From Phallusia mammillata (lineage: Eukaryota), in the NCBI GenBank assembly GCA_965637545.1, contig OZ281498.1, forward strand, positions 21,948,001 through 22,012,000: DNA of 64,000 nucleotides, written 5' to 3'. Both the position numbers and the translations under genes were made by a program. Shown one piece after another: positions 381-48,993 of the stretch. The notes beneath the pieces were generated by a model. The model saw nothing but the letters and a program-made list of their open reading frames with translations. It searched no databases and was not told the origin of the DNA. How positions within the stretch are numbered: position 1 is the stretch's first letter; every line of letters begins with the position of its first letter.

Positions 381-474
381 ATGTCGGTTAATAACAGCTG
401 TGACGATAGCAAATTTTCAGGAAATACTTCAGTCAACAGCACCACGGGAAATGTTTATGAGTATAAATCATCAG
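381..474 (+). CDS. First coding exon carrying repeat type R1 (MSVNNSCDDSKFSGNTSVNSTTGNVYEYKSS, phase-1 donor)
   Basis: ATG at 381 and CAG|GTAAAA donor at 475. Peptide and upstream sequence (ttaggtagaaat...aaagatgtcg) are homologous to the exon at 2632 and to first exons at 27589, 33719, 44089 and 47786. Confidence 0.6.
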
Positions 475-1168: not shown

Positions 1169-1672
1169 AACAACCCAAGGTGTTAAAAGATTTTTTTGTC
1201 ATCACAATGGCGGAAGTAGCACTTGCCGCAAATGTATTTGAAATAGACTTGCAAGTTTTGTATATCTCTCTCAGCGGCCCAGCGGCTGTTTTCGCGACAA
1301 GTGCCTCTTTTGGGATCGCTGGTTATGTTACTTACAAAGTGGTCAACACTAAGCAATATATGAGAGCAATACTGCAACCGTTTCAAGATCTTCCCGGTGT
1401 TATTCGAGCCTGGAGAGGGGGGAGCCTTGTGATAGAAGTTGTGGCTGAAAATGATAAAGTGGCAAAACAGATAAGGGAGAGCTGTAGGTCGGGAAAAATT
1501 TTGAGGGAAATCAACAAAAATCTTAAAGAGTACAAAAATAAATTCAAAGAAGATGCAGGCCATTTTGAAAAGGGAGCCATCGTTAAGTAAGAAAAGCTGA
1601 CAATGCCTTCGCAAGAAGAATGGGCCAAAGCCAAAATCCAATATCAGGTCAAAATCGAGAGAATCATGAAAA
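1169..1672 (+). CDS. TRADD-N-like domain exon, copy 1 (hydrophobic helix + GSLVIEV...SGKIL), with in-frame TAA at 1588-1590
   Basis: Acceptor ttgcag|1169 is phase-compatible with exon 381-474; own ATG at 1207. Clear paralogue of 8516-8987. Homology continues past the TAA (EKLTMPSQEEWAKAKIQY) to an AA|GTAAGT donor at 1673. Pattern GSLxIxV...SGxL resembles invertebrate TRADD-like N-terminal domains (recalled, not searched). Confidence 0.6.
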
Positions 1673-2631
1673 GTAAGTCAAAAACATTATGGGTTTAGAA
1701 AGCTTGAATCGAATTATCACCATGAAACTTTTTGCTACGTTGAGGTCATCGGTATTTTTGTAGTTGTGCAATTTTATGGACTTGTGAGGCTGACTTGTAG
1801 TTTCAGAGTAGGCTTGTGTTTGCGCACAGCATGGCTTGCGGAATCGGTGCAAGTAAAATACACACAAAACACCCACTGTAACGCGTTGAAATGACGCCGT
1901 ATGGCAAAATAATGAAATCAAAAAATATTTTTGTCACTTATGTAAATCAAGACACTTTTTGCAATTGAAATAAAAGCTACATACTACGCATCCAACAACG
2001 CAGATTTCAGACATTTCTCCTGATTTGAAAAACTTTCTTTCTCTGCACTCAATTAAGCATTTTTTATTGGGACGAATATTCTTTAACTATCGTCTTGCAA
2101 ACAAACCGTTCGTTTGTTTTTGGCGTGGGAAGCCTTATTTGACAGTTTGAGTACGTGACTAATGAGTTTGCTGTAAGTGCAAAACACCTGAGGTTGACCC
2201 GCATTTATTTGCATTAAGTTCACTGCCTGTCTGAACTATAAACCTTTTTTAAAAGAGCAGTTATCGGTTCCGCTTTTTACTTCAGGGCGCACGTGGGCCC
2301 CAGCGAACGAGTAAACACTTTTTTCAACAGTAAACACACGCCCCCTTAAAACACATTAGATGCAAATTTTGTTTTACAACAACAGTGCCATAATCGTTTA
2401 TTGAACTTTGGACAATAGCTTAACCTTTTTTGCGCCACTAATTCAACACCTATTTACACCCCTGAACATATAGGCCTGCAACTGCATAAAAATCACCTGG
2501 TGCGGCTTTACAGTAAAAAAGAAGTTTGGTATTGTTTAGTTAAAAACGAACGATTCTTTTGTTCTGAAGTTTTTGCGTGACGATATTAAGAATAAAGGCT
2601 TCTTAGGTAGAAATTGCCAAGGTTTTAAAGG

Positions 2632-2713
2632 ATGTCGTTTAACAACAACCTCCAGGCCAGAATTTCAGGAAATAGCATCAACAGCAATAACCGGTATGTG
2701 TATGAAGCAACAG
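2632..2713 (+). CDS. Upstream R1 exon of gene A (MSFNNNLQARISGNSINSNNRYVYEAT); alternative first exon or uORF
   Basis: ATG at 2632, CAG|GTAAAG donor at 2714, phase 1. Flanks homologous to 250-474. Confidence 0.55.
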
Positions 2714-2870
2714 GTAAAGGCCTAACTAGTTTATCAGTCACAACATGGGACTTTCAACAGCAACACGCATAGAAGAAGGATCGCAAGTGTTAATAAATAA
2801 GTGTACACAATTTAAACATTTTTGATTATCTGTCTTCAGCACACTAGGGCTTAACGTGTATTCTGTCAAA

Positions 2871-5151
2871 ATGCCTGGCGGTGTACACTTGAATATGAGT
2901 AACAATAAGTTTGATGGCAAAACCAATATTAATTCGGCTGATGGCGACATGAATGTGTATCAAGGACAAGGTGTGTTTCTTCAGGGTACTTGTTGGTAAA
3001 ATGATCTCAAAATAACGCGTGTTATCGCGCAAAACGACCCAACACCATTCTTACAAAGGAAAACCTTTTGTTTGTTTTGTGTTGCAGTGGATCAAAGCCA
3101 CCACGGAGACAGTTATACAATGCCACACGCAAACGTTACAGGAGGACACATTGGTCCACATCATGGTAACGGTAAGATGTCTTCGAGCCGTTTTTCATCC
3201 AAATGTTTACGTGTACATTGCAAGGCACAGTAGCAGTCCTTATTTTTTCTACGCTTGCACTTTTAATATAATTGTTGGGTGTGTTTGCTGGTAACAAATA
3301 ATGAGATATGGAAACTGCACTCCACTAAAACAAAAATTAAGCACGTTTGGAAACCAGCATGCAGCGACACGCTTTTTTAAGAAATATTACTTTAAACGAA
3401 TTTTTAATGTACTGTTTAACTATTTTTATTGCAGTGGATCGTCACGTGGGCAACATAACAATGCCACACGCAAACATTGGTGGATCCGTTGTATCCCATG
3501 GAGATACCAACATTGGACGCCGTAAGTGGTCGAAGCAAAAAAAATGTCTAGGTGTCAACGAAAAATTTGACCCACTTTTATTCTATGCAGAGGACGAGAG
3601 TCGACATAAACAGAACATCCAAATGAGAGACACACAAGTGTCTGGTGGCTCTTTGGTTGGAGTACAAGGCTCAGTAAACATCACAAGGGGTAAACTTGGA
3701 GGTTCGAGTATTATTGGTGTGGTGAAAAACACATCCTCAAGAAAAAACAGTCTTCGGTTTTCTTCAAATCCACAACAAAATCTTGGACATTAAAAAAACT
3801 CGACTATGATGTTCTCTCCTGGCTTGCCACATCCCTAACATTTGTTTATGTGCCTAGGTCAAGCACCAGCAAGCGCTGTTCATGACGATCAATCCACTAA
3901 ACGTTCATCGAGTTTAGCGGCAACAAAAGAGGAAGCATACATAAGGCAAGAAAAAGTATAGCCTAATATCTTTTGCATGTGTATACGCATGTTTGTGTTA
4001 ACCATCTGTAAAATTTAATCTAGTTCACCGGCAGCAGCAGGGAGCCCAAACGGAAAGTAAGTTCACAATATCTATTTATACTGCTTTATCCACTAACAAC
4101 GAAAGGATGTGTTAAGGTGTGATTGTAAACACTGCCCCGGAGGAGAAACTGAAGGTGTGTGTTGCAATGACGACGTGAACGCTCTAAAGATGATGAAAAA
4201 ATCTGCTTGGGACTGCATTGTTCAGCATCCTGCATTTGAACCCAATTGCCTTAATCCATACGTGCTTACCAACAGATACAAACGAGAGGCATCCACTGCT
4301 GGTCTTTCCCAGGCAGGGTGAGTACATGTGTTCGATATTCTACCACATTATATATAAATGGTTGCTATCCTTTTTTGGTCTGCAGTGTATATATAGGTAA
4401 ACTTCAAGCAATGCAAAAACTTAAGGCGCGTGAGCTTAACCAAGGCTTTTCGTCAGTGCTTGTCTAGCAGCATGGTCAAAGAGGGTAAATTGACGTTAAG
4501 CTTTCTTAGCTAAAAAGAAGTTAATTGCAGACAGTGTTCACTATTTCGACATATAATGCCTTTTAGTGCTGCTGGTAACAAAGAAATTGGCCGTACTGGT
4601 TGGTATAGCCACTTGTTATATTTATATGTGATACTTGGTCAGTTTGGTTTTAAGCATCTGATTGGCCATTGTGAATCTAGTTCCACCACGGTTTACACCC
4701 AGTTGTGACACAAATAATATGTGGTAAGGCACAGTATTTATTATGTGAGTCCAACAAACTGGAGTACCGTAGTCTGGCTATACTAGCCTGCTGCATGGCT
4801 AATGTCTGCCACCGTCTGCACTGACATGATAAGTCGAAACCGTTTATGTATCGGCATACTGCTTTACAAAAATTAACTTTTTAAGCACATGCATCAGCAC
4901 ATTAGAGTGTTATAGGCGTTTCGGTAGGGTAGGGGCAAAAAGGTTGAAAAACGCCGTTTATAAATTGCATTGAGGTAAATTTTTAGAAAACGAGTCCTGT
5001 TTTTTTACGCAGGAAATTTAAACTCACTGCTCGTAAAGAATACTTGGAGTGGGTGAAGTCGGATAAGGTGCCGTCGTGTGTCCAGAAAGCGATCGACGAG
5101 AAATTTCCGGATTCGTTCGGTCGAGATGGTTCCCAACCAACACTGGAATAA
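2871..5151 (+). CDS. Gene A: R1 + 3x R2 repeats + linker + P2X7 C-terminal (ballast)-like Cys/Zn domain, ~276 aa
   Basis: Exons 2871-2970, 3088-3171, 3435-3521, 3591-3689, 3858-3945 (GC donor), 4024-4056, 4117-4317, 5013-5151 join in one frame. C-terminus CDCKHC...VCC...CIVQHPAF...CL...EYLEW...VPSCV...EKFPD follows the P2RX7 tail pattern (CxCxxC...CC...CI...LPSC...FP). Confidence 0.75.
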
Positions 5152-5847
5152 ATTATGTGTACATAACTTATCCATTTGCAAAAAACAAAATGAAACTCAA
5201 ACCAAATTTGTTGACAAAAATTTCGCTGAATTGCATAATCGTTCTTGGAGTCTAATATAACATTCCGTTAGAAAACGGAACTAATGATTCGAAAAGGCAA
5301 AAGATACATTTTTTACGTAATACTCACTGGTTTTATTTTAACCAAAAGTTGTTTTAAGGCCCACCGATTTTACCGCTTCAAAGTAACAAACAGTGATCGC
5401 CAGCTACCCTGCTATTATGTTAAACAATGCTTGTGAAAATGTGTTTTTAGAAGTGCGAAAATATCTTGTTTTGAAATGATTGTATTTTTACGTGGTTCGT
5501 GTATAGCCGTGTGTGATCTTCCATGAAGCAAAATATACTCAGCGTAACCTTACTTTAAATGGTGGAACTATGTCCGATAACTTTGTAGTTGCAATATATT
5601 TTGTGTTACAAGCATCTTGTGGCGGGCGCCTATTTAGGATTGGTTAAAATTGTTTCCGTCTAAAAACGTCTTTTGTGTCCGCGAAAAGCTAAGTATAATG
5701 TCTTTTCAGGTCGTGCTGTAACCTTGTCAAGTCAACTAGTGCAGCTCACGACATGCGGACACTGGGGGCGCCATAGACATCACTAGTGACGTAATAACTA
5801 TATCAAACCCTGCGACATCCAGATTTTAAAAATAAAAAAATAGGTTT

Positions 5848-6039
5848 GACTAAAAGCCTGACTGCCTGACTGGCCTGACTTGGGCGTCCGTGTTTCACAA
5901 TACATTTTCGGACTGACTCTAACCCTCACCCTAACGACCCCAACGGTTAGCCAATTCTTAATCACCCAAGTCAGGTCTTCTGAGTTGCAGTCATGCCGTT
6001 CCCAGCCGTCAAAAATGTCGGGCAGTCAGGCTTTTAGTC
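5848..6039. mobile_element. MITE-like inverted-repeat element
   Basis: 19-bp perfect inverted repeat GACTAAAAGCCTGACTGCC (5848-5866) / 6021-6039; no coding capacity; TSD not resolved. Confidence 0.6.
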
Positions 6040-6128
6040 GACCTCTAAAAAACTGCTTACTTTAATCGTTAACAGCAATGGATTTCGTGTGTGGGGCGGT
6101 TGTAAGTTGCTTTATTTGAGCAGCAAGC

Positions 6129-6142
6129 GCTACCATGGTAAC
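6129..6142. promoter_or_regulatory. RFX X-box-like palindrome next to a GC box
   Basis: GCTACCATGGTAAC, one mismatch from GTTACCATGGTAAC; GGGGCGG at ~6093. Target gene unknown. Confidence 0.3.
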
Positions 6143-8515
6143 AAATTGTCCACAAACAAACGCCGTTTGACATTTTACATCCGCCACCTGATCTGCAATA
6201 TACGAGCGACAGGAGACTTAATTAAAAAAAGTCCCCGGGTTGATGCCTTTAGGTGAATCACCTGGGTTTTCTCGTCTGTTTTGCTGCAAAGGCTCAATAT
6301 GTGCTTTGTGTTGGCGTCATTGCACTGCGTTCTGGTTCTAGTACTGACAAAATATCGGACAAAGTCGAACAAAGACGAGTTAACTTAAATCTTTTGGGGT
6401 TACGGAAGAAGTTTTAATTATGTTTCCGATCATCCAGCAAGGTACAATAGGCGATAAACGTGTGTGTTAAAACAGAAACAGACATTTTGTTGTTTTACAG
6501 GGTTGTTGAAATGGAAATTCAAACTGAAATTTACGAAATTGTGACCAATTGCCAATATTGTATAAATCTTTACCATATCGGCCTATCAATATTGTACATA
6601 TACTTGCGTCTGCATATGCCCTCACACGAAATGAAGATATCGTATTTTTTGTATATATGTTTTATCCATTCAAATGTAACATGAAATACCATAAAGTTGT
6701 GTTTTGCAAACCTTTTGTTGTTGTAGGTATGGGTGATACACAGCTGATATTTTTTTAGTTTAACTTCCACTTTGTGGCGTATCAGAGAGAAATGAAAATG
6801 TGTAAATTTTAAGTGAAAGGTTAGGACCATAATAATGCACCAAAGTTCTGTTATTCGAAATATTTCGGGACAAGTTAAGACCATTGAGCTAAAGGTTAAG
6901 TGTTATTTGAAAAAGACCACACTGATTTTTCGGACTGTCTGTGTTTGACAAACTTCGTCTTGATCAATTTATCTATCAATATCTTATTGTTGTTTTATGG
7001 TTCGTAGATGTAATAACATATCTTTTTAAAAGTGAATCGAGTCGTACTTGGTCCCGAAAGTTTAATACGATAAAATGACATTACAGTACAGAAGTGATCT
7101 AAAGTGTGATGTTAGCCCATAATAAACCCCGTTTTATTTCAACTAAAGACTGACCCCAACCCAAAAAGTCTGTTCCCGCTAGAATTCCTTTACCCAAAAC
7201 AATTTGGAACTTAAACAATACGTGGGCGGACGACGGCGCGGGATTTACTTCTGAATAAAGGTTTGACATAATTACAAATCCAAAAAGTTAACAACAAGGT
7301 TATAAACATGACGTGCTTACCGGTCAAGAAATGCACAAGTCACACAATGTACGACAGGCAACAATTCAGTGTCGAACAGCATTAATTTCCTATTCGTTAC
7401 CTGAAGAAAACACATAACCGACCAGTTAATAAATACATGCGGCCTCCACAAGGTAATCTAGTCACTAATAAACACAAGGCAGCCTTGCGTACAAGTCGTG
7501 ATACCAATAACAATGCCATGGTTGTGACATCACAAGTACCGATAGTGTGACAGACAATGCTCCAGGTTGCACAAACAAGTTAATCAAGGCTATTGGCGGG
7601 AAACATAGAAAACATAAACGTCTGTACAATAGCAAAGAATGGAAAATATTTTTCTATAATTACGAAATCGGTCGATAAAAATTGTGGAATATATATATAT
7701 ATTGCCCAATGTCATCGTCAGTTCCTATAAAACCAAATAAAACATCTATAAAAGAAGAAGAAAACAATGGCGGTGTAACAGTTACTTTCCTGACCTTTCT
7801 TTCGATTCGATTTTACAGTCACTTTTAATAGCTCGGATTTACGACCCCTTTCGTATCATCTTGCGTGTTGAGACGAGTCTTCATTCAATAAAGCTGTTTG
7901 CTCACTAGCTGAAAAACGCAAGACTTTACCGTTAAATAACGTAATACCAAAAGTAACGCTCTTAAGTTCAGTGCTGTAATAATCTGAAGGGCCATGTACC
8001 GTAAACCTGTCGTAAGTTTTAATACCCTCTGTGTGTGTTAACTTCTACATGTACCACAACCTTGCTTTTTCAGCAACTTTCATCTAAGAAACCAGGTGTG
8101 TAGGCCTATTTGTTCGTTAGGCTACAAGTTTGGCTATTTCGTACAGCATTTAAACCAGTTAAACTAATGTGAAAAGCAAAACTGGAATTGCACCAGGTTG
8201 AAAAAGCTTTTTTAGTTTTGCTGTTTCGTATAAACACTACATACTTGATTTGAGGGGTGGATCTGGCAAAAAAGTAAAGTGGCTGTTTTGTGAACAGGAG
8301 TAAATCTTGGATCTGACTGAAAGTGACGCTCTCCAAAACAAAGTGACCAATTAAGATTCAGGAGTATATATTGTACTTTGGAAAAACCAACTGACCTCGT
8401 TTTTAAATGCATTTGTGCGATTTCTTTGCTAACGACGTTTATTACATTCATAAGATTTCTTACATTTACAGAAAAAAACAGGGTCTTAAAGTATTTGGTG
8501 ATCACAAATGTGTAA

Positions 8516-11500
8516 ATGACAGGCGTAGTTCCACTTCAGCTGGGCGCAAATTCTTTTAAAATAGATTTGCACGTTTTAAATATCTCCCTTAATGGCCCAG
8601 CGGCGGTTTTTGCGACAACTGCCACTTTTGGAGTTGGGAGCTATGTTGTCTATAAACTGGTAAACAGCGAGCAGTATATGAGAGCAATACTTCAACCTTT
8701 TCAAGATCTTGCTGGTGTTATTCGAGCGTGGAGAGATGGAAGCCTTGTTATAGAAGTTGTTGCTGAAAATGATGAAGTGTCAAATCGAATTAAGGAGGTT
8801 TGCCTGTCGGGGGAAATTTTGAGGGAAATCAACAAACGTCTTGAAAAGTATGAAGAAGAATATAAAGAAGATGTTGGTCGTTTTGATAAGCTTGATATCA
8901 TTACGGAAGAAACGCTTGCGATGTCGTTGGACAAATGGGCCAAAACAAAAGCCCAATATCAGATTACCATAAAAAAAATAATACAAAGTAAGTCAAAAAA
9001 ATGGTTGACAAATGTATACCTTTATGTTTTCTTTAATAAACAACCGAAAAATACATTTCATTTGGCCCAATAATAAAGCCACATTATTCAAATTCAAAAA
9101 ATAGCTTCAAGTGTGTCTCATCACAAGTCTTTTGACTGATTTTTACCAATGATGTCTTAGTTAATACAAATATACTGTTACCTTTTCGATACACAATTGT
9201 TTGAAAACCCATTTGTTTCTGCTTGAAGGAACAATTATGTTGTTTAAAGACAGGGGCCCTTTTAAAATTAGGCAATAAACATTTTTCCACGGAAAATGAT
9301 GAAGGTGGTTATTCATTACATAGGAAGTATAAATATAAATTACCAACATTTTAGGATCCATTTCTTGTGTGAACATAAGAACTGGTAGCAATGTGTTGCC
9401 AATGTTTGTATTTTTGCCAAACTTAAATCTAAAACCAAATTTGTATCCTCCCATTGATCCAGATTTTACAAAACAGACAAATTTTTAGCTGTACATGGGA
9501 AACATTAAAAATATGTTTATAAATTTTTTTTCTTGTGTAGAAATATCAGAAATAGGTAAGGGTCATCCAAACATGCCACCCACTCATTCACCTAAGTCAT
9601 CTTTGCTTGGGGTAAGTCTTATCACATTACTTTCACTTTAAAGTTCTTGGAAACCAATTGTTCTTTGCTTTTAAGTTTGCTTTAAACCAACTGTAGTAAA
9701 TATTGTATTCTGGATTGGTTTTATGGCAAGATTGCTGTCAATTGGTGTACTTAAGCAGTTAGGCTTAGTGGTGGTATAAAATAATAAAGAGTAAATTACA
9801 TATACCACTTTATTGTAGATTGATTAATTTGTTTTAATAATTTTAAATTTTATCAAGCAGATTGGCAAGCCAGAAGATTCACAAAGGCCGCCAAAGTCGG
9901 TCAATCAACCACAATGGTACGAACAAAAAGACTTGAACATAAAAGAGGATTCACCCGAGAGGTCAGTTTTCAAACTTGCAAAGATATACTGTTGCCCTCA
10001 TTTTCGTATGGTTTAATGGTTGCTTTGTTTATAGGCAACCGACACAGCCCCAAGGTATGTATCGCTATTTAATGGCCTTTTGAGGTACAGTCAAACTTCG
10101 ATACTGTGCCACCCTTTGGGACCGAAAGAAAGTGGCATAGTAGCGAGGGTGGCATAATAGCGAAGGTCGGTTGTAAAAATAGCCTTGTGACGTGACAATG
10201 TACTGTAATGCCACGTTGTGTTGTACGATTGCAATTTATTACAGTATACAGTATAAGGTACAGTATGCAGTATAATTTATTACAAAAAACGGATAGATCG
10301 TGCATAGAACAAACAGGATTTGTTAGTTTTGTCGTGACACAAGCACGGAACGGCGTTTGCATAACTCGCTGAAAAGCTGTGAAACCTCTTAACATGACCA
10401 CGTTTGTTTACTCAACGATTTGTTTTTCATGTTTTCTCTGTTTTATCATGAGTTCAAACCGAAAATTGTCAATTTTCAATCCGGAACCAGACCGTTAATA
10501 CAGTAATACTGTACTCTCATGTGTCATAGTATCAAGGGTAAGGGGTGGCATAGTAAATATATTTTCTATTGAATTTAGTTGGTGACGATCAAAAGTGGTA
10601 TAGTATCAAGGTGGCATAGTATCGAAGTTTGACTGTATATTTAAAAAACTTTGGTCAGTGCTGCCCTACAACAATAATCCATCCTCTCTAAATTAGCGAT
10701 TTTAACCAGGGAGTCGAACCAGAACTGAACCCGAACCCGCGAATTTCGATTTTCTACAAACACAAACCGGAGTTAAACCGCTTATTTTGCTTAGCGTTGG
10801 ACCCGAACCGGAACCGAACCAGTAAAAAATGCATTTTGTTTTATATTTTGCGATTTTTTTCAAAACAGTGCATGGAAGAATGCACCAGATAACACTTATA
10901 GGGCGTGTCAAAAATAAAACAGTGCACGGGCAAAAGGCTTTTGGAGTTTGATAAGGCCAGTTAGATGATGGGTAGAATTAAATTAAAACGAATAAAAATT
11001 TGAACCGGTTTAAAAACCGCAAACCGGTTCTGATCGGATAATTTGCCCAAACCGAAACAAAACCCGAACCCGAAAATATACATTTTTGAAAACCGAACCC
11101 GAACCCGAACCCTTAAAAACAAAACCAAGTGAACCCGAACCGAACCTGAACCCATATGACAAGCGGTTCGACTCCCTGATTTTAACACAATCTGCCTTTT
11201 TTACGTATGTGGCGTTTTTCCATATTATTTACTGTATTTCGAACAGACAAAATGATTCACGTGATAGACGCAAAGTTTTCTAACGGTGCCCATGGTCGGC
11301 AATATCAAACTTTGACCACAGTGTAAAACTCATTTCTGTACATGTGGTTATGTTGAAGGCGCAGTAGGTCCCTCTTACATCCAGTCCACATTTCGGAAGT
11401 TAAAAGTGTCAACGGAGGTTAAAAGCATTGACAGTGGATATGGGGAGTCATCCTCGTGCGATACCAGTCCACAAACATGCATCTTTCGCTCTGGAAGCAA

Positions 11501-27588: not shown

Positions 27589-27682
27589 ATGTCTGTTAAG
27601 AGCAACTTTCAACATTGTCGTTTTACTGGAGAAAACTCGTTTAACAGCAGTCAACGAGATATCAATATCTACAGAGCTCCAG
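27589..27682 (+). CDS. Upstream R1 exon of gene B (MSVKSNFQHCRFTGENSFNSSQRDINIYRAP); alternative first exon or uORF
   Basis: ATG at 27589, CAG|GTAGCG donor, phase 1; peptide aligns with the other R1 exons. Confidence 0.6.
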
Positions 27683-28059
27683 GTAGCGGAGAAATAGTAG
27701 ATTGAAAATAACCTATATCCTATGTCAAGATTGCAATAATGTTACAGTCTAAAGTTTGGGTAAAACTAGCTTAAACCAGGGCCTTCACGCTTGGTTACGA
27801 TGCTCTTGTAAACCCGACTTTTGGGTTCGCTCACAGTTCTATGCCTTTGTCATGGCTAAGTAAAAATTACTTGATGCAATATGACACAGTATTGGTAAAA
27901 CCTTCGTTTCATTATCAGTCACAGGAAATGAAGTGGTTAACCGGAAATAGTTATAGTGTTGGAAAATAAGAAAATCTATGAACTACAGAATTTATTGTGT
28001 TTATGTTTTGCTGTTTAGCCTTTATTTCTTCAATAAACCAAATCGTGTAACACATCATT

Positions 28060-30026
28060 ATGTCCAAACGTGTTGGAATAGAAATGACTAACTGTCAATT
28101 ATCAGACAATGTAACTTTCAACTCGAGCGAACGTGACATGAGCATCTACAACGGCCCAGGTGTGTTAAAAAACACAACGTTACCAAAACTGTACTGTTCT
28201 ACTTGGTAACCCAGCTGGCAAACTCAACAGCAAACGAAAAGTTAATGTTTGATATTTTTCACACAGTTGATCAGAGCAAACACGAACAGCACATCGACGC
28301 GAGCAACGCCAAGATATCAGGAAACTCAGTTGTGGGTGCAAAATCCGTCACAGTTACTAATTGTAAGTTCGCTTAAATTCATAACTTAATGGTATAGGAC
28401 ATAGGTACACCCTCTTGAATTTGTCAACAAAAAATTAATTCTCCTAAATTTGTCAGCGATGTTTTTCTGTAGGTTGGATAAACGTTTTAACATTCCAACG
28501 AAAACAAAAATTCGAACATGCAAAATCAAATGCTTGAATTGGTACACGTCTCGCAAGTTCGTTGCGCGTGCATGATATTGTCGGGAAGTGTGTGTGTGTG
28601 AATTTATGTTTTTTCCTGACTTGCACGTGACTCATTTCGCGCCCTTTACCACCACTTGAAAGTGTGACGTCATTTCCTGCCCTGCTGTGAACATTTTGAT
28701 CCAGGTTTTCGGGAATAATATATTTTATTTTTTAGTCGGAGGTGTGATTAAGTGTAAAACAATAAATAAAACGAGAATCGATTACGAAAATAGACCCTAA
28801 ATGCCACTTTATTCTTGCTAATCTAAAAAAATACATTCACCCCACTTTAAATGGGCCACAGCAAAAGTGCTAACTGAAACAAACCTTTATTTTATGTGTG
28901 ACCACAGCTACTAATCAAGTATACTTGTGGCAAACTTTCTTCAATTTATGCATTTAGAGACACTTTTAGATGCAAATTACAATCATGATAAAACTATCAC
29001 AGCATGCAATTTTTTTCCAGATGTTACCCATATGGGTGCATATTGCTTTGCGCTAACATTCCTTTGTGTGTAGATGCTGCACCGCCGCCAGCACCAACTA
29101 ATCCACCAGCACAGGCTCCACAAACCTCGCCCCCTGCTGCAGCAACGCCACAGACCGAACCACAGCAAAACCCGTGAGAAAAGTTTGGAAAAGTTTACCA
29201 ACATAGTGTTTTTTAACCCTTAAAGGTCGCAGGCTGCATCGTTTGTTTAATTTTTGTCGTCGGTGGGCAACTGTGCCCACAAAGAGTCCGCTGTAGAGCT
29301 GCCTATAATTGTTCCAGGTCCGTTGAATCATTTTTATGTGATGTTTTTGGACACAAAAGTTGGTGACCTCAATTTAGTTTAACCCATCGAGTTCCACTGG
29401 GTTGGAGCAATGCTGCTCAAGAAAACACAAGTGGCACAGACTGGAAACAACTCGTAAACACAAGGCGGTTGCGCTAACAATCCGGCCTTCTTGGCGACTA
29501 CTATTTCAGTAGAATAACCAAAACAAATCTCCAAAACTCATTAACGACTTTTTAAACTTTCACGAATACGTTACTGTTGTTTAGATGTGACTGTGGAAAA
29601 TGTCCGGATGAAAATGTCGGCAACCGTGTGTGTTGTCGAACCGACGCTATGGTATGGAGAAAAATGAGCACCTTTCCCATTACCACGTGCATTAGGGAGC
29701 ACCCAGCCTTCAATGCATGTTGTTTGGATAAATATATGCTTGAAAAGAATTACAATCGAAACAAACGACGCTTCCCGAATGCAATTCCTGGAGGACTTTC
29801 CCAACCAAAGTAGGTGTTATTAAAATGGAGAAAAACCTCTCATTCGTGATTTTGTTCTATATTGCACAGGAAATACAAGCGAACAGCAGAAGGCGAGTAC
29901 TTGGATTGGTTAAACCCAGATAACCAGAACAGAGATGCTACACTGCCATCCTGTGTCAAAGAGGCTTTTGATGTGAAATTTCCCGATTCAACTGTCCGTG
30001 ATGCCTCTTGGCCTGTGCTACAGTGA
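28060..30026 (+). CDS. Gene B: R1 + R2 + Pro/Ala/Gln linker + P2X7 C-terminal (ballast)-like domain, ~225 aa
   Basis: Exons 28060-28159, 28267-28362, 29074-29173, 29585-29809, 29870-30026 join in frame (an extra small phase-2 exon is possible). CDCGKC...VCC...CIREHPAF...CL...EYLDW...LPSCVKEAFDVKFPD; same intron positions as gene A. Confidence 0.75.
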
Positions 30027-30207: not shown

Positions 30208-30301
30208 GCTTTCTACATTGCCATATTGTGCCAAAGAGGCTTTTGATGAGAAATTTCCACATGCAATTGTTATAATGATGCCTCGGCCTGCGCTGCAGTA
30301 G
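30208..30301 (+). CDS. Partial duplicate of the gene B last exon; possible alternative terminal exon
   Basis: Acceptor ttgaaaacag|, phase-2 frame open: LSTLPYCAKEAFDEKFPHAIVIMMPRPALQ*, homologous to TLPSCVKEAFDVKFPD...WPVLQ*. Confidence 0.4.
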
Positions 30302-33718: not shown

Positions 33719-34257
33719 ATGTCTGGTGCTAAGAACGCTTTCAATGGATGCACATTTGGGAACGACACCAAGATTTTTCAAAATGAAGGCGACGTACACA
33801 ACTATAACGGCGAAAAGGCTCAAAGTAAATCAGTGTTTAAGTTATATTATTGCTTCAGTAGTCAGCACTAGACTCGGACTTAAATTAGTGACTAAATAAA
33901 AAAAATCACCGTGGAAGCTTACGTCGTAAAGACATATGATTGTCAAACGTTTGCAATAAATGTATTTTTACATTGTTGGTAATGTATTTAATCGAGCTTG
34001 GCTTCAAATTGAGTGTAACTTCTATAAAGGTAGTCCAGTAATTTGAGTTGTAGTTGCCGAGCGATTTGGCTATCAGCCACCAATTGTTTCCTCTACTGTT
34101 TTGTGATTGCCAAATCACGTTAATTTTTTGTCGTGTAACTTTGCACTTTGTTGCACCACAGTTGACAAGAGCGAACACAAACAGGTGATTGATATGAGGG
34201 ACTCAAATGTTGAAAACTCAGTGCTTGGTGTCCAAGGGAATGTAAACATGAATGTTG
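33719..34257 (+). CDS. Gene C: R1 + R2 microprotein; last exon unresolved
   Basis: Exon 33719-33824 (MSGAKNAFNGCTFGNDTKIFQNEGDVHNYNGEKAQ) and exon 34162-34257 (IDKSEHKQVIDMRDSNVENSVLGVQGNVNMNV), both with phase-1 GT donors. Possible ends: read-through stop at ~34266, acceptor at 34293, or exon 35949-36163. Confidence 0.7.
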
Positions 34258-44088: not shown

Positions 44089-45941
44089 ATGTCTGCTCAA
44101 AGCAACAATAACAGTGGAGATGTAAACTACTACAGTGCTGGGGTAATAAACGGTAAGAAAAAAACGCTTTGTACTCTTTACGTTCAAACCGATGCTTATA
44201 ATTTTTTTTTTTTTTCAGTACAGCTTGTAATTTGTAAATGTCCCGTAACAGAAAATGTCAATATACCTCTTAAATGTAAAGAAGAACTACTGGCCCCAAT
44301 GGTAAAGAACTATTCATTCACTGTTTTTAAATCGTGTCTTTCGGTGTTGTAACAGTGGTATTGTTGGTGCGGTTAAGTTTTTCGTTTTATTGGACACAAA
44401 TCAGAAGCCACAGTTCGAGCCAGGCCGACAACTTTATTAATTCTGACATAGTTAACTCCCGAAGAGACGAACAGCATGTAGACATGAGAAGCGCAACCCT
44501 TAACGATTCAGCAGCTGCAGTACAAGGAGATGTAAATCGCTCCAAACGTGAACGTGAACGTGATAAAAATGATGGTAACTGTTTCAAACAGATTTTTCTT
44601 GTATCTTGCGTATACTTATTACGTTTCAGACTTTGGACAACAATAATCGTATGTGCTTTGGTCACACTCCGGTTTATGCGCGACTATGGTTTTTAAGGTT
44701 ATATACATCATTACCAGCTCCCAGGGTACACTAAAACCCGCTATGAGCAACGTTAGACTAACATACTGTTACCACACACCAGTTCATGTTGTACAATGTA
44801 CAGCATACACTTTTTAACAAGCATAATATTAGAGGGGCATTTGTCCTGATTTTAATGTTTCCTTTCTTTGTGGGTTAATAATGGTGCAAGCGTTTGGCGT
44901 AGGGAACCAGTTTCTTTTCTGACCTGCACACAATTTAATGTGGTCAATCTTTAACCGATCTCTTTAACCTTTTTGAAACAAACACTGTGACAACGGATAC
45001 ACAAATAAAGACACGGGCATTGTGACTTTTTATTAGGGTTTTCTAAGTTTTATGACAAGGAACCAACCTAAGCAAACAGAACTTGTCTTGTGTGGGTCTG
45101 TGCCGTTTGGGTTAATGGCATGTCGTAATGATTTTAAACAACGCGGACCAAAGAAATCTGTTGCTGCAAGGCATGATGTTAAGTAATGCTTTTCCAGCAG
45201 TTTTTGTCATTAATAATTACCGACGTTTCGACGTCCCATACGAGACGCCTTTATCGGATAATGGCTTATTTTGAAAGACTAACTTCTAATAATGCTACAA
45301 AAGAAACAAAACACACACAAAAGCAGCATTCGTTTATGATATGTCATTACATCAAAATTCAACAAAACTTGGCTACACGCCATTAACGGGTGCTATTGGC
45401 CTTGCCTTTGCACTCCGGGCTGCGCCGTCGTTGTCTACTATTTGCGAACCTCTTGCCTAAAGGCTTCTCGATTATTTATTACATTAACTGCTGGAAGAGC
45501 AATACGCTTTTATTGTGGAATAAACTCGATTATTTTAAATTTGCAGAGCAGCACCCTTCTGACGATTTTAATCTGTACGACGAAAGTCCACGCTCAGTCC
45601 ACTATAGCGACAACGATTTTGGTGTTTCACCTTTTTTGTCCACGCCAGCATACATACCTGGTTTCAAAGCACCACCGAGAAGGGCAGTATTAGTGCATAG
45701 GCATGTTCCTGTTAGCACAAACCACTTTGGCTTAGCACACTCAAGGTCTTCTCAGCCCCCTATTGCTTTGCCCGCCCGGTCCCCGCCGCCAGGAGCAGGT
45801 TATAGATCTGGCGTTATGCACGCTCGACCTATTCCTGGTCGTCCAATGGCTCCTATGTATAGTTCACCGTCGCAACATTTTCACGGCGCTTCTCATGGAA
45901 GGATTAATCCCATGAGCGGAGGAGGTCATTTTCGGCGATAA
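44089..45941 (+). CDS. Gene F: internally deleted R1 + R2 + Pro/His/Gly/Ser-rich disordered tail, ~184 aa
   Basis: Exons 44089-44152 (MSAQSNNNSGDVNYYSAGVIN), 44452-44547 (alternative donor 44574) and 45547-45941, all phase 1. The join to the last exon is inferred from phase. Confidence 0.6.
45216..45262 (-). ncRNA. Degenerate Penelope-type hammerhead motif
   Basis: Minus strand ATTATC-CGATAAA-GGCGTC(loop)GACGTC-GAAACGTC-GGTAAT: stems I and II intact, catalytic core mutated. Confidence 0.5.
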
Positions 45942-46730: not shown

Positions 46731-47785
46731 TAACTCAAATACGACGTTATTTAACACAATTTTTTATGACCGCACGAGGTCGTACAAGCGCTAGTTGTGC
46801 AACCTCTTTAAAATGGGTTTTTACCACCCATACAAGCATATTTGTTAGTGGTGTTTAAGAGCAAAGACTTTGCGAGGACATCGACCATTGTGTTGTAAAA
46901 TATTGCGACTTAGGCACAGCAAACCTTACGCAACAAAGCGGAACAAAACTACAGTGAAAAGGGGGAACCGAAACTTTCACGCCGTAGTCGTTCTAGCTGC
47001 CAAGCCTTGTGATCAAGCAGATTAAAATTCAAAAATCACTATCAAAAACTAGGTTGTATGAATTTGCACAGTACATAAACAACTTATTAAGCAAAAATTA
47101 ACCCAAAAACGTAGCTGCTGTGGCATTAATTCCCTACAAAGCGAAAAAATATTAAGACAAAGGCCACGTTTGCAGGGAAGTTACGTGAAAAAAATCCCCG
47201 AATTCTTTCCCTGGTATTTTGCTTGGGTTGATTCTCTATTAAAATTACCTAGTGGTTGTTGGATGTAACACGAGAACATTTTGATACAGTGGCTTATCGC
47301 TAGCAACTTATGTAATGCAGCAAAAGCAAGGTTGCAAAAGATGATAAGTAAAAGTATTGCTTTTAATATTGCTTGGTACGAACAAAACTGGCAATAAAGT
47401 AGCTAAAAGAGGTTGCTTTTTTTACTTGAATATTTTAAATAAACTATTGCTGTGATCAGTTTACTGTTTTTACGTATTAGTTAACTACGATTTACACTAC
47501 TTTTTTGAAATGCAGATTAAGTAAGGCATAATAATTGACTACCGTCTTTTGCTACTTCAATTTGCTGTTAGTAAAAGAACTAACTTTGTCACCAAAACTT
47601 ATGCTACAATAATCTTCGCTCTTTTATCATTACAAACAGGCAGAAATAAATTCTGATTTCAGATAAAAACGTTATAGCAGTCAGTTTCATTTTGAAGTTT
47701 TTTTTTATGATTTCTTTATCGCAGATTTAAGTTAGGCAAAATAACTTTTTTTAGTTGTACAAAAAAACAACTAAAAATCGAAATA

Positions 47786-48993
47786 ATGTCAGTTTCAAAC
47801 ACCTATAACGGTTGCAAGTTTGATGGAAAAACTCAAATATACTCAAACAGTGGGGATGTGAACAATTACAATGCACCAACTGTAAAAGGTGAGAGACAGT
47901 TGATTGCTTGTTAAGTACATAAGCATTTGATCTAAATTTGTTTTTTATTTGATATTTTAGTTGATAAAAGCAAACATGAACAACACATTGATATGAGAGG
48001 CGCTCGTATAAGCGGCTCAATAGTTGGTGTACAAGGAAACGTCAATATTGGCAAAGGTAAGGAACAAACGTTTTGATCTCACCGATCATTTTCGAAATAA
48101 ACAAGAATTTTGTAAATTGTATTTATTTGTTACTGTCAGCACAGAGTTTCTTAACCGGGAGTAAATTAAACCTAAAAAAGTAAATTTGACATGCTTTAGT
48201 CCAGTGGTGCTCAACCAGGGCCCATGACCCCCAGGGGCGTTCCGGGGGGGCACACTTGAAGGGGGCCACAAGGCCAAAAAATTACTTTTAGGGGGTCACG
48301 CTCCACGAAAGGGTGAGAACCACTGCTTTAATCGTTCATTTTATTAAGCCCAAAGAAATTTGCGTATGTATGATTAGTGAGGGAAATTTCATTTTCAAAA
48401 TCTTCTCAGGTGTAAACGGGAGAAAATTGATTAAAAATTTCCAATTGCCATAAAATCGACATGCATAATGGCTTTTAAAGCCTCAATTCTTTATTATTTG
48501 AATACAATTTTTAGGGTTAAATTTCAAACACGTTCAACTGAATCATATATTTGTCCTAAAAGTGCAATTTTCCCCATATTAAACAGTACCAGTCAATGAT
48601 AAAACAAAGGCTAGTTATGTACGTTCCGTTCCGGGAAATACCCCCGTAGTTGGTACCCGTAAATATTTAAATGTTACAGTTCCTCCTCTGCGTTTCAATT
48701 CCTCTTGCGAAATCAGTCAAACGTTTACAAGGGGCAGTAAAACTTTATAAGCTATTGGAGGGCTATAAGAGAAAACTCATCAGCTGGAATGGAATACAGC
48801 GACAAACCCGTCAAATAAATATGTTATTGTTTGTGTCTGTTAAAAGGGGGCATTTATATATCTCTTGTTTGTTCATGGGCAGTACAGATAACAACGTTAC
48901 AATAAACTTGTAAAAGAGTCGGACAAGATTATTATTTTAATTTAAAGCTCATGGTCCAATTTATATTTTTCAGGTGAAAATGGAAAATACTGA
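47786..48993 (+). CDS. Gene E: R1 + R2 microprotein, ~72 aa (MSVSNTYNGCKFDGKTQIYSNSGDVNNYNAPTVKVDKSKHEQHIDMRGARISGSIVGVQGNVNIGKGENGKY)
   Basis: Exons 47786-47888, 47961-48056 with strong GTGAG/GTAAG donors; last exon 48974-48993 (alternative acceptor at 48410). Confidence 0.7.
48202..48325. mobile_element. Short hAT MITE in gene E intron
   Basis: TIR CAGTGGTGCTCAACC / GGTGAGAACCACTG; TSD CTTTAGTC/CTTTAATC (7/8). Confidence 0.85.

Follow-up and report, generated by a model that had tools for sequence, protein, structure and literature searches.

Within a 64,000-nucleotide stretch of the genome of the ascidian Phallusia mammillata (contig OZ281498.1 of assembly GCA_965637545.1, forward-strand positions 21,948,001 to 22,012,000; hereafter the window, in whose own numbering all coordinates are given), we examined a gene, here called gene A, that joins short repeat modules to a cysteine-rich C-terminal domain. 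Its surroundings are eukaryotic DNA with 37% G+C and short introns with GT-AG borders, and the gene looks real. A sequence-only reading had described it as an eight-exon open reading frame (ORF) in which four amyloid-like repeat modules are fused to a free-standing relative of the cytoplasmic ballast of the P2X7 receptor. Eight plus-strand exons with GT-AG borders are indeed found, although the exon 7 start at 4117 given in that reading breaks the frame and a start at 4106 is favored. The exons are as follows.

2871-2970, plus strand: exon 1, the ATG and the R1 head module, 33 codons, ending in phase 1
3088-3171, plus strand: exon 2, R2-type module 2, His/Gly-rich, phase 1 to phase 1
3435-3521, plus strand: exon 3, R2-type module 3, phase 1 to phase 1, R2 profile E 1.6e-11
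3591-3689, plus strand: exon 4, R2-type module 4, phase 1 to phase 1, nearest to the R2 modules of the neighboring genes B, C, and E
3858-3955, plus strand: exon 5, a Ser/Ala/Lys-rich linker, collinear with residues 458-479 of the Phallusia protein P0002 (below); with an alternative GC donor, its end would be at 3945
4024-4056, plus strand: exon 6, an 11-codon linker ending in PKRK, whose frame 0 matches P0002 477-484
4106-4317, plus strand: exon 7, the first half of the zinc-cysteine (ballast-core) domain, with its start at 4106 in the canonical in-frame model
5013-5151, plus strand: exon 8, the second half of the domain, a helix ..TA..EY..W followed by V-P-S-C...I-D-E-K-F-P, with the TAA stop at 5149-5151

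Junctions one to four are all in phase 1, and every R2-type module has one exon to itself, symmetric (phase 1 at both ends) and 84-99 nt long. Read-through of the exon-4 donor (3690-3793) adds 34 codons (..G-G-S-S-I-I-G-V-V..) before a stop, within an ORF at 3347-3793; if the donor were left unused, a repeat-only isoform would be possible. At the 3' end, an AATAAA at 5147-5152 overlaps the TAA stop of exon 8. No membrane-like stretch occurs in any gene A exon, the highest 19-residue Kyte-Doolittle mean being 0.34, which agrees with the earlier statement that the gene encodes neither a channel nor a transmembrane region.

Two P. mammillata protein entries are central to the interpretation of this locus. 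P0002 is a 603-aa 'uncharacterized protein', and P0001 is labeled 'P2X purinoceptor 7-like [Phallusia mammillata]' in NCBI. Both are CAB-numbered entries, which we take to be translations of transcript models and therefore refer to as cDNA-derived; contigs encoding P0001 or P0002 are not on record. P0001 corresponds to a paralogue of gene A, gene B, that lies further along the window with the following layout.

28060-30026, plus strand: gene B, five exons, 225 aa, no internal stop
28060-28159, plus strand: gene B, R1 exon
28267-28362, plus strand: gene B, R2 exon
29074-29173, plus strand: gene B, Pro-rich linker
29585-29809 and 29870-30026, plus strand: gene B, the two exons of the zinc domain

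The translation of the last gene B exon is identical to P0001 residues 55-105 at 50 of 51 positions, and P0001 spans the predicted junction of the two zinc-domain exons; with P0002 also from this species, the protein matches by themselves assign the window to Phallusia or a species very near it.

Exons 2, 4, 5, 6, 7, and 8 of gene A match P0002 in order across residues 356 to 603, all within the single ORF of that protein, beginning with exon 2 at residues 356-373 (E 1.7e-5) and ending with exons 7 and 8, which are 48% identical to P0002 486-555 and 54% identical to P0002 557-603, respectively. The exon 7/8 junction of gene A (..GLSQA | G | KFKL..) reads ..GLSQA-E-KYKL.. in P0002. In gene B the layout recurs intact, with both domain introns in phase 2 at the same places. 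Because gene A exons 2-8 are collinear with the single P0002 ORF and gene B repeats the layout, the repeat exons and the Cys-domain exons most probably form one coding unit, in keeping with the fusion proposed in the sequence-only reading, and we infer from the paralogues that gene A is expressed as a single mRNA. An alternative would have the 5' exons encode microproteins made of R modules only and exons 7-8 a separate protein consisting of the zinc-cysteine domain (ZCD), the fusion being an artifact of prediction. Genes C and E, which appear to combine R1 and R2 only, would accord with such an arrangement, as would the product of gene B, which begins within a zinc-domain exon, the read-through of exon 4 to an early stop, and the purely genomic nature of the sequencing runs that hold gene A, with no RNA among them. 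However, exons 7-8 have no ATG upstream of the Cys cluster, every junction phase of gene A fits, and the linker exons 5 and 6 as well as the order of the cassette are collinear with one P0002 ORF, so that we regard separate products as unlikely.

The same comparison bears on the one junction of gene A that can be drawn in two ways. An exon 7 start at 4117 combined with GT donors gives a broken frame with a stop at codon 169 and was rejected as out of frame. In one workable model, exon 7 follows the AG at 4104-4105 and starts at 4106, all sites are canonical, and a protein of 283 aa is encoded in frame; in the other, the GC donor at 3945 is combined with a start at 4117 to give 276 aa in frame. 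We favor the 283-aa model because frame 0 of exon 6 (..SSREPKRK) matches the P0002 linker ..SEKPPKRK, although it is the 276-aa model that retains the position of the phase-2 intron of gene B. A word-index protein search with exon 7, P0002:330-603, and whole P0002 returned nothing except P0002 itself, and thus neither an annotated product of gene A nor another R-module protein.

The C-terminal domain can be placed by profile comparison. An alignment of exon 7 from gene A and gene B, searched as a profile against 1.84 billion representative proteins, matched 142 proteins at E <= 1e-3, and the two best were P0001 and P0002, both from P. mammillata. The Pfam family of the P2X7 C terminus, PF20478 (P2RX7_C), is present in the matches P0004-P0008, P0021, P0024, and P0133, and it is carried by all matches that hold the full domain (20/20; best E 6e-18). 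When alignments built from the window only were compared by hhalign with these 20 PF20478-positive domains, exon 7 scored 99.4% (E 3e-21) and exon 8 scored 86% (E 5e-6), and a profile of the matches found P2X7 residues 475-594 in the PDB (E 1.5e-13). The profile match to P2RX7_C anticipated in the sequence-only reading is therefore obtained by profile-profile comparison but not from the Pfam model itself, which misses exons 7 and 8 at E <= 1 and the whole of P0002 at E <= 0.01; phmmer searches of exons 7 and 8 against the PDB likewise gave only chance-level matches.

Structure prediction leads to the same family. For P0002:480-603, the domain of the closest paralogue with a reference, AlphaFold gives a model with a predicted local distance difference test score (pLDDT) of 84, and the top 12 Foldseek rows for this model are all P2X7, with weak E-values (0.3 and above); the P2X7 structural match was settled by a second look with VIA. 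The ballast fold is thus recovered with evidence taken from the paralogue P0002. Taken together, the comparisons support the view that the C-terminal domain of gene A is a diverged, free-standing member of the P2X7 ballast / ZCD / KolX family, as the sequence-only reading had proposed on its part, and that it corresponds to the last ~115 residues of the roughly 200-residue ballast.

Whether such a domain could retain the ligands of its P2X7 relative depends on residues that can be read from the alignments. The zinc-cysteine domain is defined by three clusters, (P)xWCxCxxC, CC...C-I-T, and PSC...IR..FP, the last in full (L/I/V)PSC(C/S)xxxIRxx(F/Y)P (Rump 2020, PMC7016195). In gene A, the first is found in exon 7 as R-C-D-C-K-H-C, with three Cys that are invariant in the alignments and the Trp changed to Arg. 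The second, also in exon 7, reads V-C-C...D-C-I-V-Q-H-P-A-F...C-L and aligns with the invariant CC, C-I, and H columns of the 20 PF20478-positive domains. The third, V-P-S-C-V-Q-K-A-I-D-E-K-F-P in exon 8, keeps PSC, Ile, and F-P, and the Arg of I-R is replaced by Asp, a change common to gene A, gene B, and P0002. All conserved Cys of the zinc site are kept, together with an additional His and Cys typical of free ZCDs. The guanine-nucleotide site is another matter: where rat P2X7 has R546, H547, R574, R578, and K583, the aligned residues of gene A are K, L, Q, D, and D. Invertebrate ZCDs retain only two of the GDP ligands throughout, and R578 is among them (Rump 2020, PMC7016195); gene A, gene B, and P0002 all have Asp in its place. 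Since the conserved Cys are kept and the GDP residues are replaced, zinc binding by the gene A domain is likely and guanine-nucleotide binding is unlikely. The sequence-only reading had noted that the P2X7 ballast binds zinc and guanine nucleotide; for gene A, only the former is likely.

Further context for the domain comes from the N-terminal portion of P0002. Residues 59-190 comprise a ZU5 domain followed by His-Phe-Ser (HFS); Pfam ZU5 is matched at E 1.3e-8, and the PDB matches are the ZU5 domains of ZO-1 and ankyrin. The His-Phe-Ser is at residue 182, and about 150 residues without domain assignment follow. The C-terminal part then runs from three R2 modules through a linker to the ZCD. 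In PIDD1, UNC5CL, NLRP1, and CARD8, the chain cuts itself at an HFS-type site after ZU5 and ends in a death-fold domain. By analogy, the R-ZCD cassette of P0002 would occupy the slot where these four proteins carry their death-fold domain. P0002 resembles the ZU5-UPA-death-fold proteins in having ZU5 and HFS ahead of a C-terminal cassette, whereas it ends in R modules and a ZCD instead of a CARD or death domain, lacks a detectable UPA, and has a self-cleavage that is putative.

It is also necessary to consider where the domain of gene A came from. Free proteins with the ballast fold are the KolX proteins of Kolobok transposons (Kojima 2022, PMC9587614), and fusions to THAP, integrase zinc-binding, or Mutator domains are frequent among the closest relatives outside Phallusia. 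The gene A domain is probably a domesticated transposon module. The proposal that it still serves as a domesticated KolX, with a nuclear or nucleic-acid role such as Kolobok control and with repeats that are a lineage-specific low-complexity extension without a part in signaling, draws additionally on the PKRK that resembles a nuclear localization signal directly before the domain in both gene A and P0002. A nuclear role, or a role in nucleic acids or transposon control, is possible for the domain. Against this, genes A and B are host genes of several exons whose intron phases are conserved, the interval 1641-8516 contains no ORF of at least 110 aa able to encode a transposase, gene B has no PKRK, and the cassette of P0002 follows ZU5, which is a signaling and not a transposon context; we consider this proposal improbable as a full account of gene A. 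A transposon-borne KolX copy was rejected as well, given the introns shared with gene B and the lack of a transposase ORF, although no search for terminal inverted repeats was made.

The repeat modules are a separate source of evidence. Modules 2-4 of gene A are mutually similar far above shuffled sequences (z 5.0-6.3, p <= 0.0005), module 2 scoring z 5.0 against module 3 and z 6.3 against module 4, while exon 1 gives a pairwise z of about 0 against all three. Four repeat modules had been described at first; the repeats are real and modules 2-4 are alike, but exon 1 is a distinct head type, R1, related to R2 only at the profile level (54%). Both types recur across the window. A census with R1 and R2 profiles, the R1 family alignment comprising six heads in the window, located seven R1 first exons (381, 2632, 2871, 27589, 28060, 33719, and 47786), all with their own ATG and a phase-1 end, and seven R2-type exons, three of them in gene A and the others at 28267, 34162, 44463, and 47961. 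By tblastn, exon 4 of gene A matches at 47963, 34164, and 28269, with E-values from 9e-8 to 7e-5.

The sequence-only reading had called the repeats amyloid-like and had cast the ballast-like domain as an effector or sensor activated by oligomerization. In a model built on this, repeats of the RHIM/HET-s type would undergo templated polymerization and so activate the effector. Necroptosis and fungal NLR systems provide established cases of amyloid signaling motifs, and there is a resemblance to RHIM/HET-s motifs in that the R modules are short, Gly/Asn/Gln-rich elements at protein ends with alternating hydrophobics (e.g., ..S-L-V-G-V-Q-G-S-V-N-I..) and also occur as stand-alone small proteins, from apparent R1R2-only microprotein genes nearby. 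Nor is a stable monomer fold predicted for the module region of P0002 (pLDDT 37); this is a single-sequence AlphaFold model, however, whose low score is uninformative either way and carries no weight. The R modules have G-V-Q-G in place of the RHIM core (I/V)-Q-(I/V)-G, Pfam gave no match to any gene A exon at E <= 1, the R2 profile found no match in the PDB and no RHIM chain at E <= 10, and neither enzymatic nor pore-forming activity is known for the ZCD. Lacking the tetrad and any Pfam or PDB match, the RHIM/amyloid label for the repeats was rejected as unsupported, and activation of an effector by polymerization has, in our judgment, little probability.

The composition of the modules brings to mind a role in metal handling, in which metals would be buffered or transported by His-rich modules together with a Cys-rich zinc domain. 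Phallusia accumulates vanadium, His is abundant in modules 2 and 3, five consecutive His stand ahead of the repeat modules of P0002, and the gene A domain is a predicted zinc site. Yet genes B, C, and E do not share this abundance of His, the protein has no signal peptide or vacuolar targeting feature, and the ZU5 context of P0002 favors signaling, which makes metal handling a very unlikely function, the least probable of those considered here.

We tentatively prefer a different account, which we would place somewhat short of an even chance: gene A would be a lineage-specific ascidian gene whose soluble ~283-aa product acts as a free adaptor of a ZU5-type signaling system. The protein would consist of an Asn/Gly-rich R1 head, three R2-type modules of ~30 aa, a Ser/Lys-rich linker ending in PKRK, and the ~115-aa C-terminal domain, and would thus represent the R2-linker-ZCD cassette of P0002 on its own, provided with an R1 head. 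Because the zinc Cys are kept and the basic residues for GDP are lost, the domain is better read as a zinc-stabilized protein-binding module than as a nucleotide sensor. Contact with other R-bearing proteins would be made through the R modules, and partners that carry a ZCD would be brought in through the ZCD; we infer both kinds of binding, as well as the adaptor role itself. The ZU5 context of P0002 likewise points, by analogy, to an adaptor in preference to a sensor, and a cassette standing alone would be adaptor-like in the manner of ASC.

Several observations weigh against the adaptor reading. The initial Met of P0001, the gene B product, falls within the first zinc-domain exon of gene B, and it may be either that gene B also yields a ZCD-only transcript or that the P0001 cDNA is 5'-truncated. 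The gene A stretch is present in two sequencing runs, both genomic, with contigs that include introns; no RNA run contains it, and in two small runs presumed to be RNA no contig covers it. UPA was not detected by Pfam after the ZU5 of P0002. Self-association of the fold, which would favor the reading, is known from the soluble human ballast domain, a trimer in solution (PMC9574498), but the P2X7 ballast trimer involves residues before 475 that have no counterpart in gene A. For the R modules there is no match among known families or structures, which makes a binding role for them conjecture. Finally, most relatives of the gene A domain are found in transposon-type proteins with THAP, integrase, or Mutator domains.

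A more far-reaching version of the adaptor reading can be outlined. In ascidians, the ballast/ZCD fold would be a homotypic signaling domain standing in for a CARD or death domain; self-cleaving ZU5 sensors would release or expose an R-ZCD part, genes A and B would bridge R-bearing proteins to putative ZCD-headed caspases, and R1R2 microproteins would tune assembly. We regard this scheme as doubtful, although somewhat less so than the accounts based on separate products, amyloid polymerization, or domesticated KolX function.

Gene A and gene B are accompanied by other R-bearing elements in the window, two of which are additional R1-type exons upstream of the main ones.

2632-2713, plus strand: an extra R1-type first exon, R1', with its own ATG, a phase-1 end, and an R1 profile match at E 7.6e-11, 157 nt upstream of the gene A ATG
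27589-27682, plus strand: a second R1-type exon of gene B, with its own ATG, 377 nt upstream of the main R1

Both are candidate alternative first exons, and the one at 2632 could alternatively be a remnant; its 5' leader resembles the leader of the R1 exon at 381. That exon (381-474, plus strand, phase-1 end) can be spliced in frame to an ORF of ~140 codons at 1169 (1169-1590), which contains a hydrophobic stretch (..SGPAAVFATSASFGIAGYV..). The second domain of this neighboring R1 gene (1171-1587) has no Pfam or PDB match, and the R1 head seems to be used with a different C-terminal domain in the gene at 381-1590. Each R1 ATG is preceded, at a distance of 25-55 nt, by a pyrimidine-rich tract with AG at its end (e.g., 2831-2840, 28010-28018, and 47745-47753). 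From their sequence, these tracts look like spliced-leader trans-splice acceptors, and spliced-leader trans-splicing is common in ascidians.

Genes C and E (33719-34257 and 47786-48993, plus strand) have the appearance of R1+R2 microprotein genes without a zinc domain; counting six more codons from a short final exon, placed by eye near 48973, gene E would encode about 72 aa. A lone R2-type exon lies at 44463-44537 (plus strand). At 30218-30298 (plus strand), 190 nt past the gene B stop, there is a degenerate second copy of the end of the last gene B exon (..P-Y-C-A-K-E-A-F-D-E-K-F-P..), which is probably a pseudo-exon from a local duplication. The family also extends beyond the window. Genomic read contigs contain second versions of gene A at 2876-2954 (exon 1), 3623-3693 (exon 4), and 5093-5184 (the end of exon 8), with about 9-11% mismatches and a depth equal to that of the main contigs; at least one further close paralogue of gene A must therefore be present elsewhere in the genome.

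Our findings may be set beside what has been described for related domains. Compared with the P2X7 ballast core (human/rat residues about 475-595, PF20478), gene A has neither the channel nor the palmitoylated anchor, the first ~80 ballast residues are missing, and the extra conserved His and Cys (C-I-x-x-H...C-L) are common to free ZCDs and not to P2X7. The likeness to free ZCDs, zebrafish nanor, and KolX (PMC7016195, PMC9587614) is that of a C-terminal domain in a soluble protein with a lineage-specific N-terminal part, and homology is found by direct profile search. Unlike these, gene A belongs to the host and has several exons, two conserved introns interrupt its domain, repeats are fused to it (joined by ZU5 in the paralogue), and Asp stands at the GDP ligand R578 that invertebrate ZCDs conserve. 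The only partner domains of ZCDs reported in Rump 2020 (PMC7016195) are TolA and THAP, and no tunicate is among the ZCD species named there.

Free ZCD proteins with variable N-terminal parts are thus already known, and the product of gene B is labeled P2X7-like in NCBI. What is new is the subfamily, defined by the loss of the GDP residues, the fusion to modular R exons, and the placement after ZU5. In the literature searched, no description of a fusion between R modules and a ballast domain was found, which agrees with the initial impression that the combination was undescribed, and no paper there dealt with both ZU5 and the ballast.

To our knowledge, the function of the P2X7 ballast is not known to anyone, and its free relatives are known only as short proteins or transposon passengers. 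A fold that keeps a zinc site but not a nucleotide site, and that is wired into a family of modular repeat exons, makes the role of this poorly understood domain testable. Its candidate partners are concrete (other ZCD proteins, ZU5 sensors, and proteins with R modules), and the chordate in question lends itself to manipulation. Such work could show whether the domain captured by P2X7 was originally a module for protein recruitment and, if the homotypic-signaling scheme were true, the ancestral role of the P2X7 ballast would be that of a cell-death or immune adaptor.

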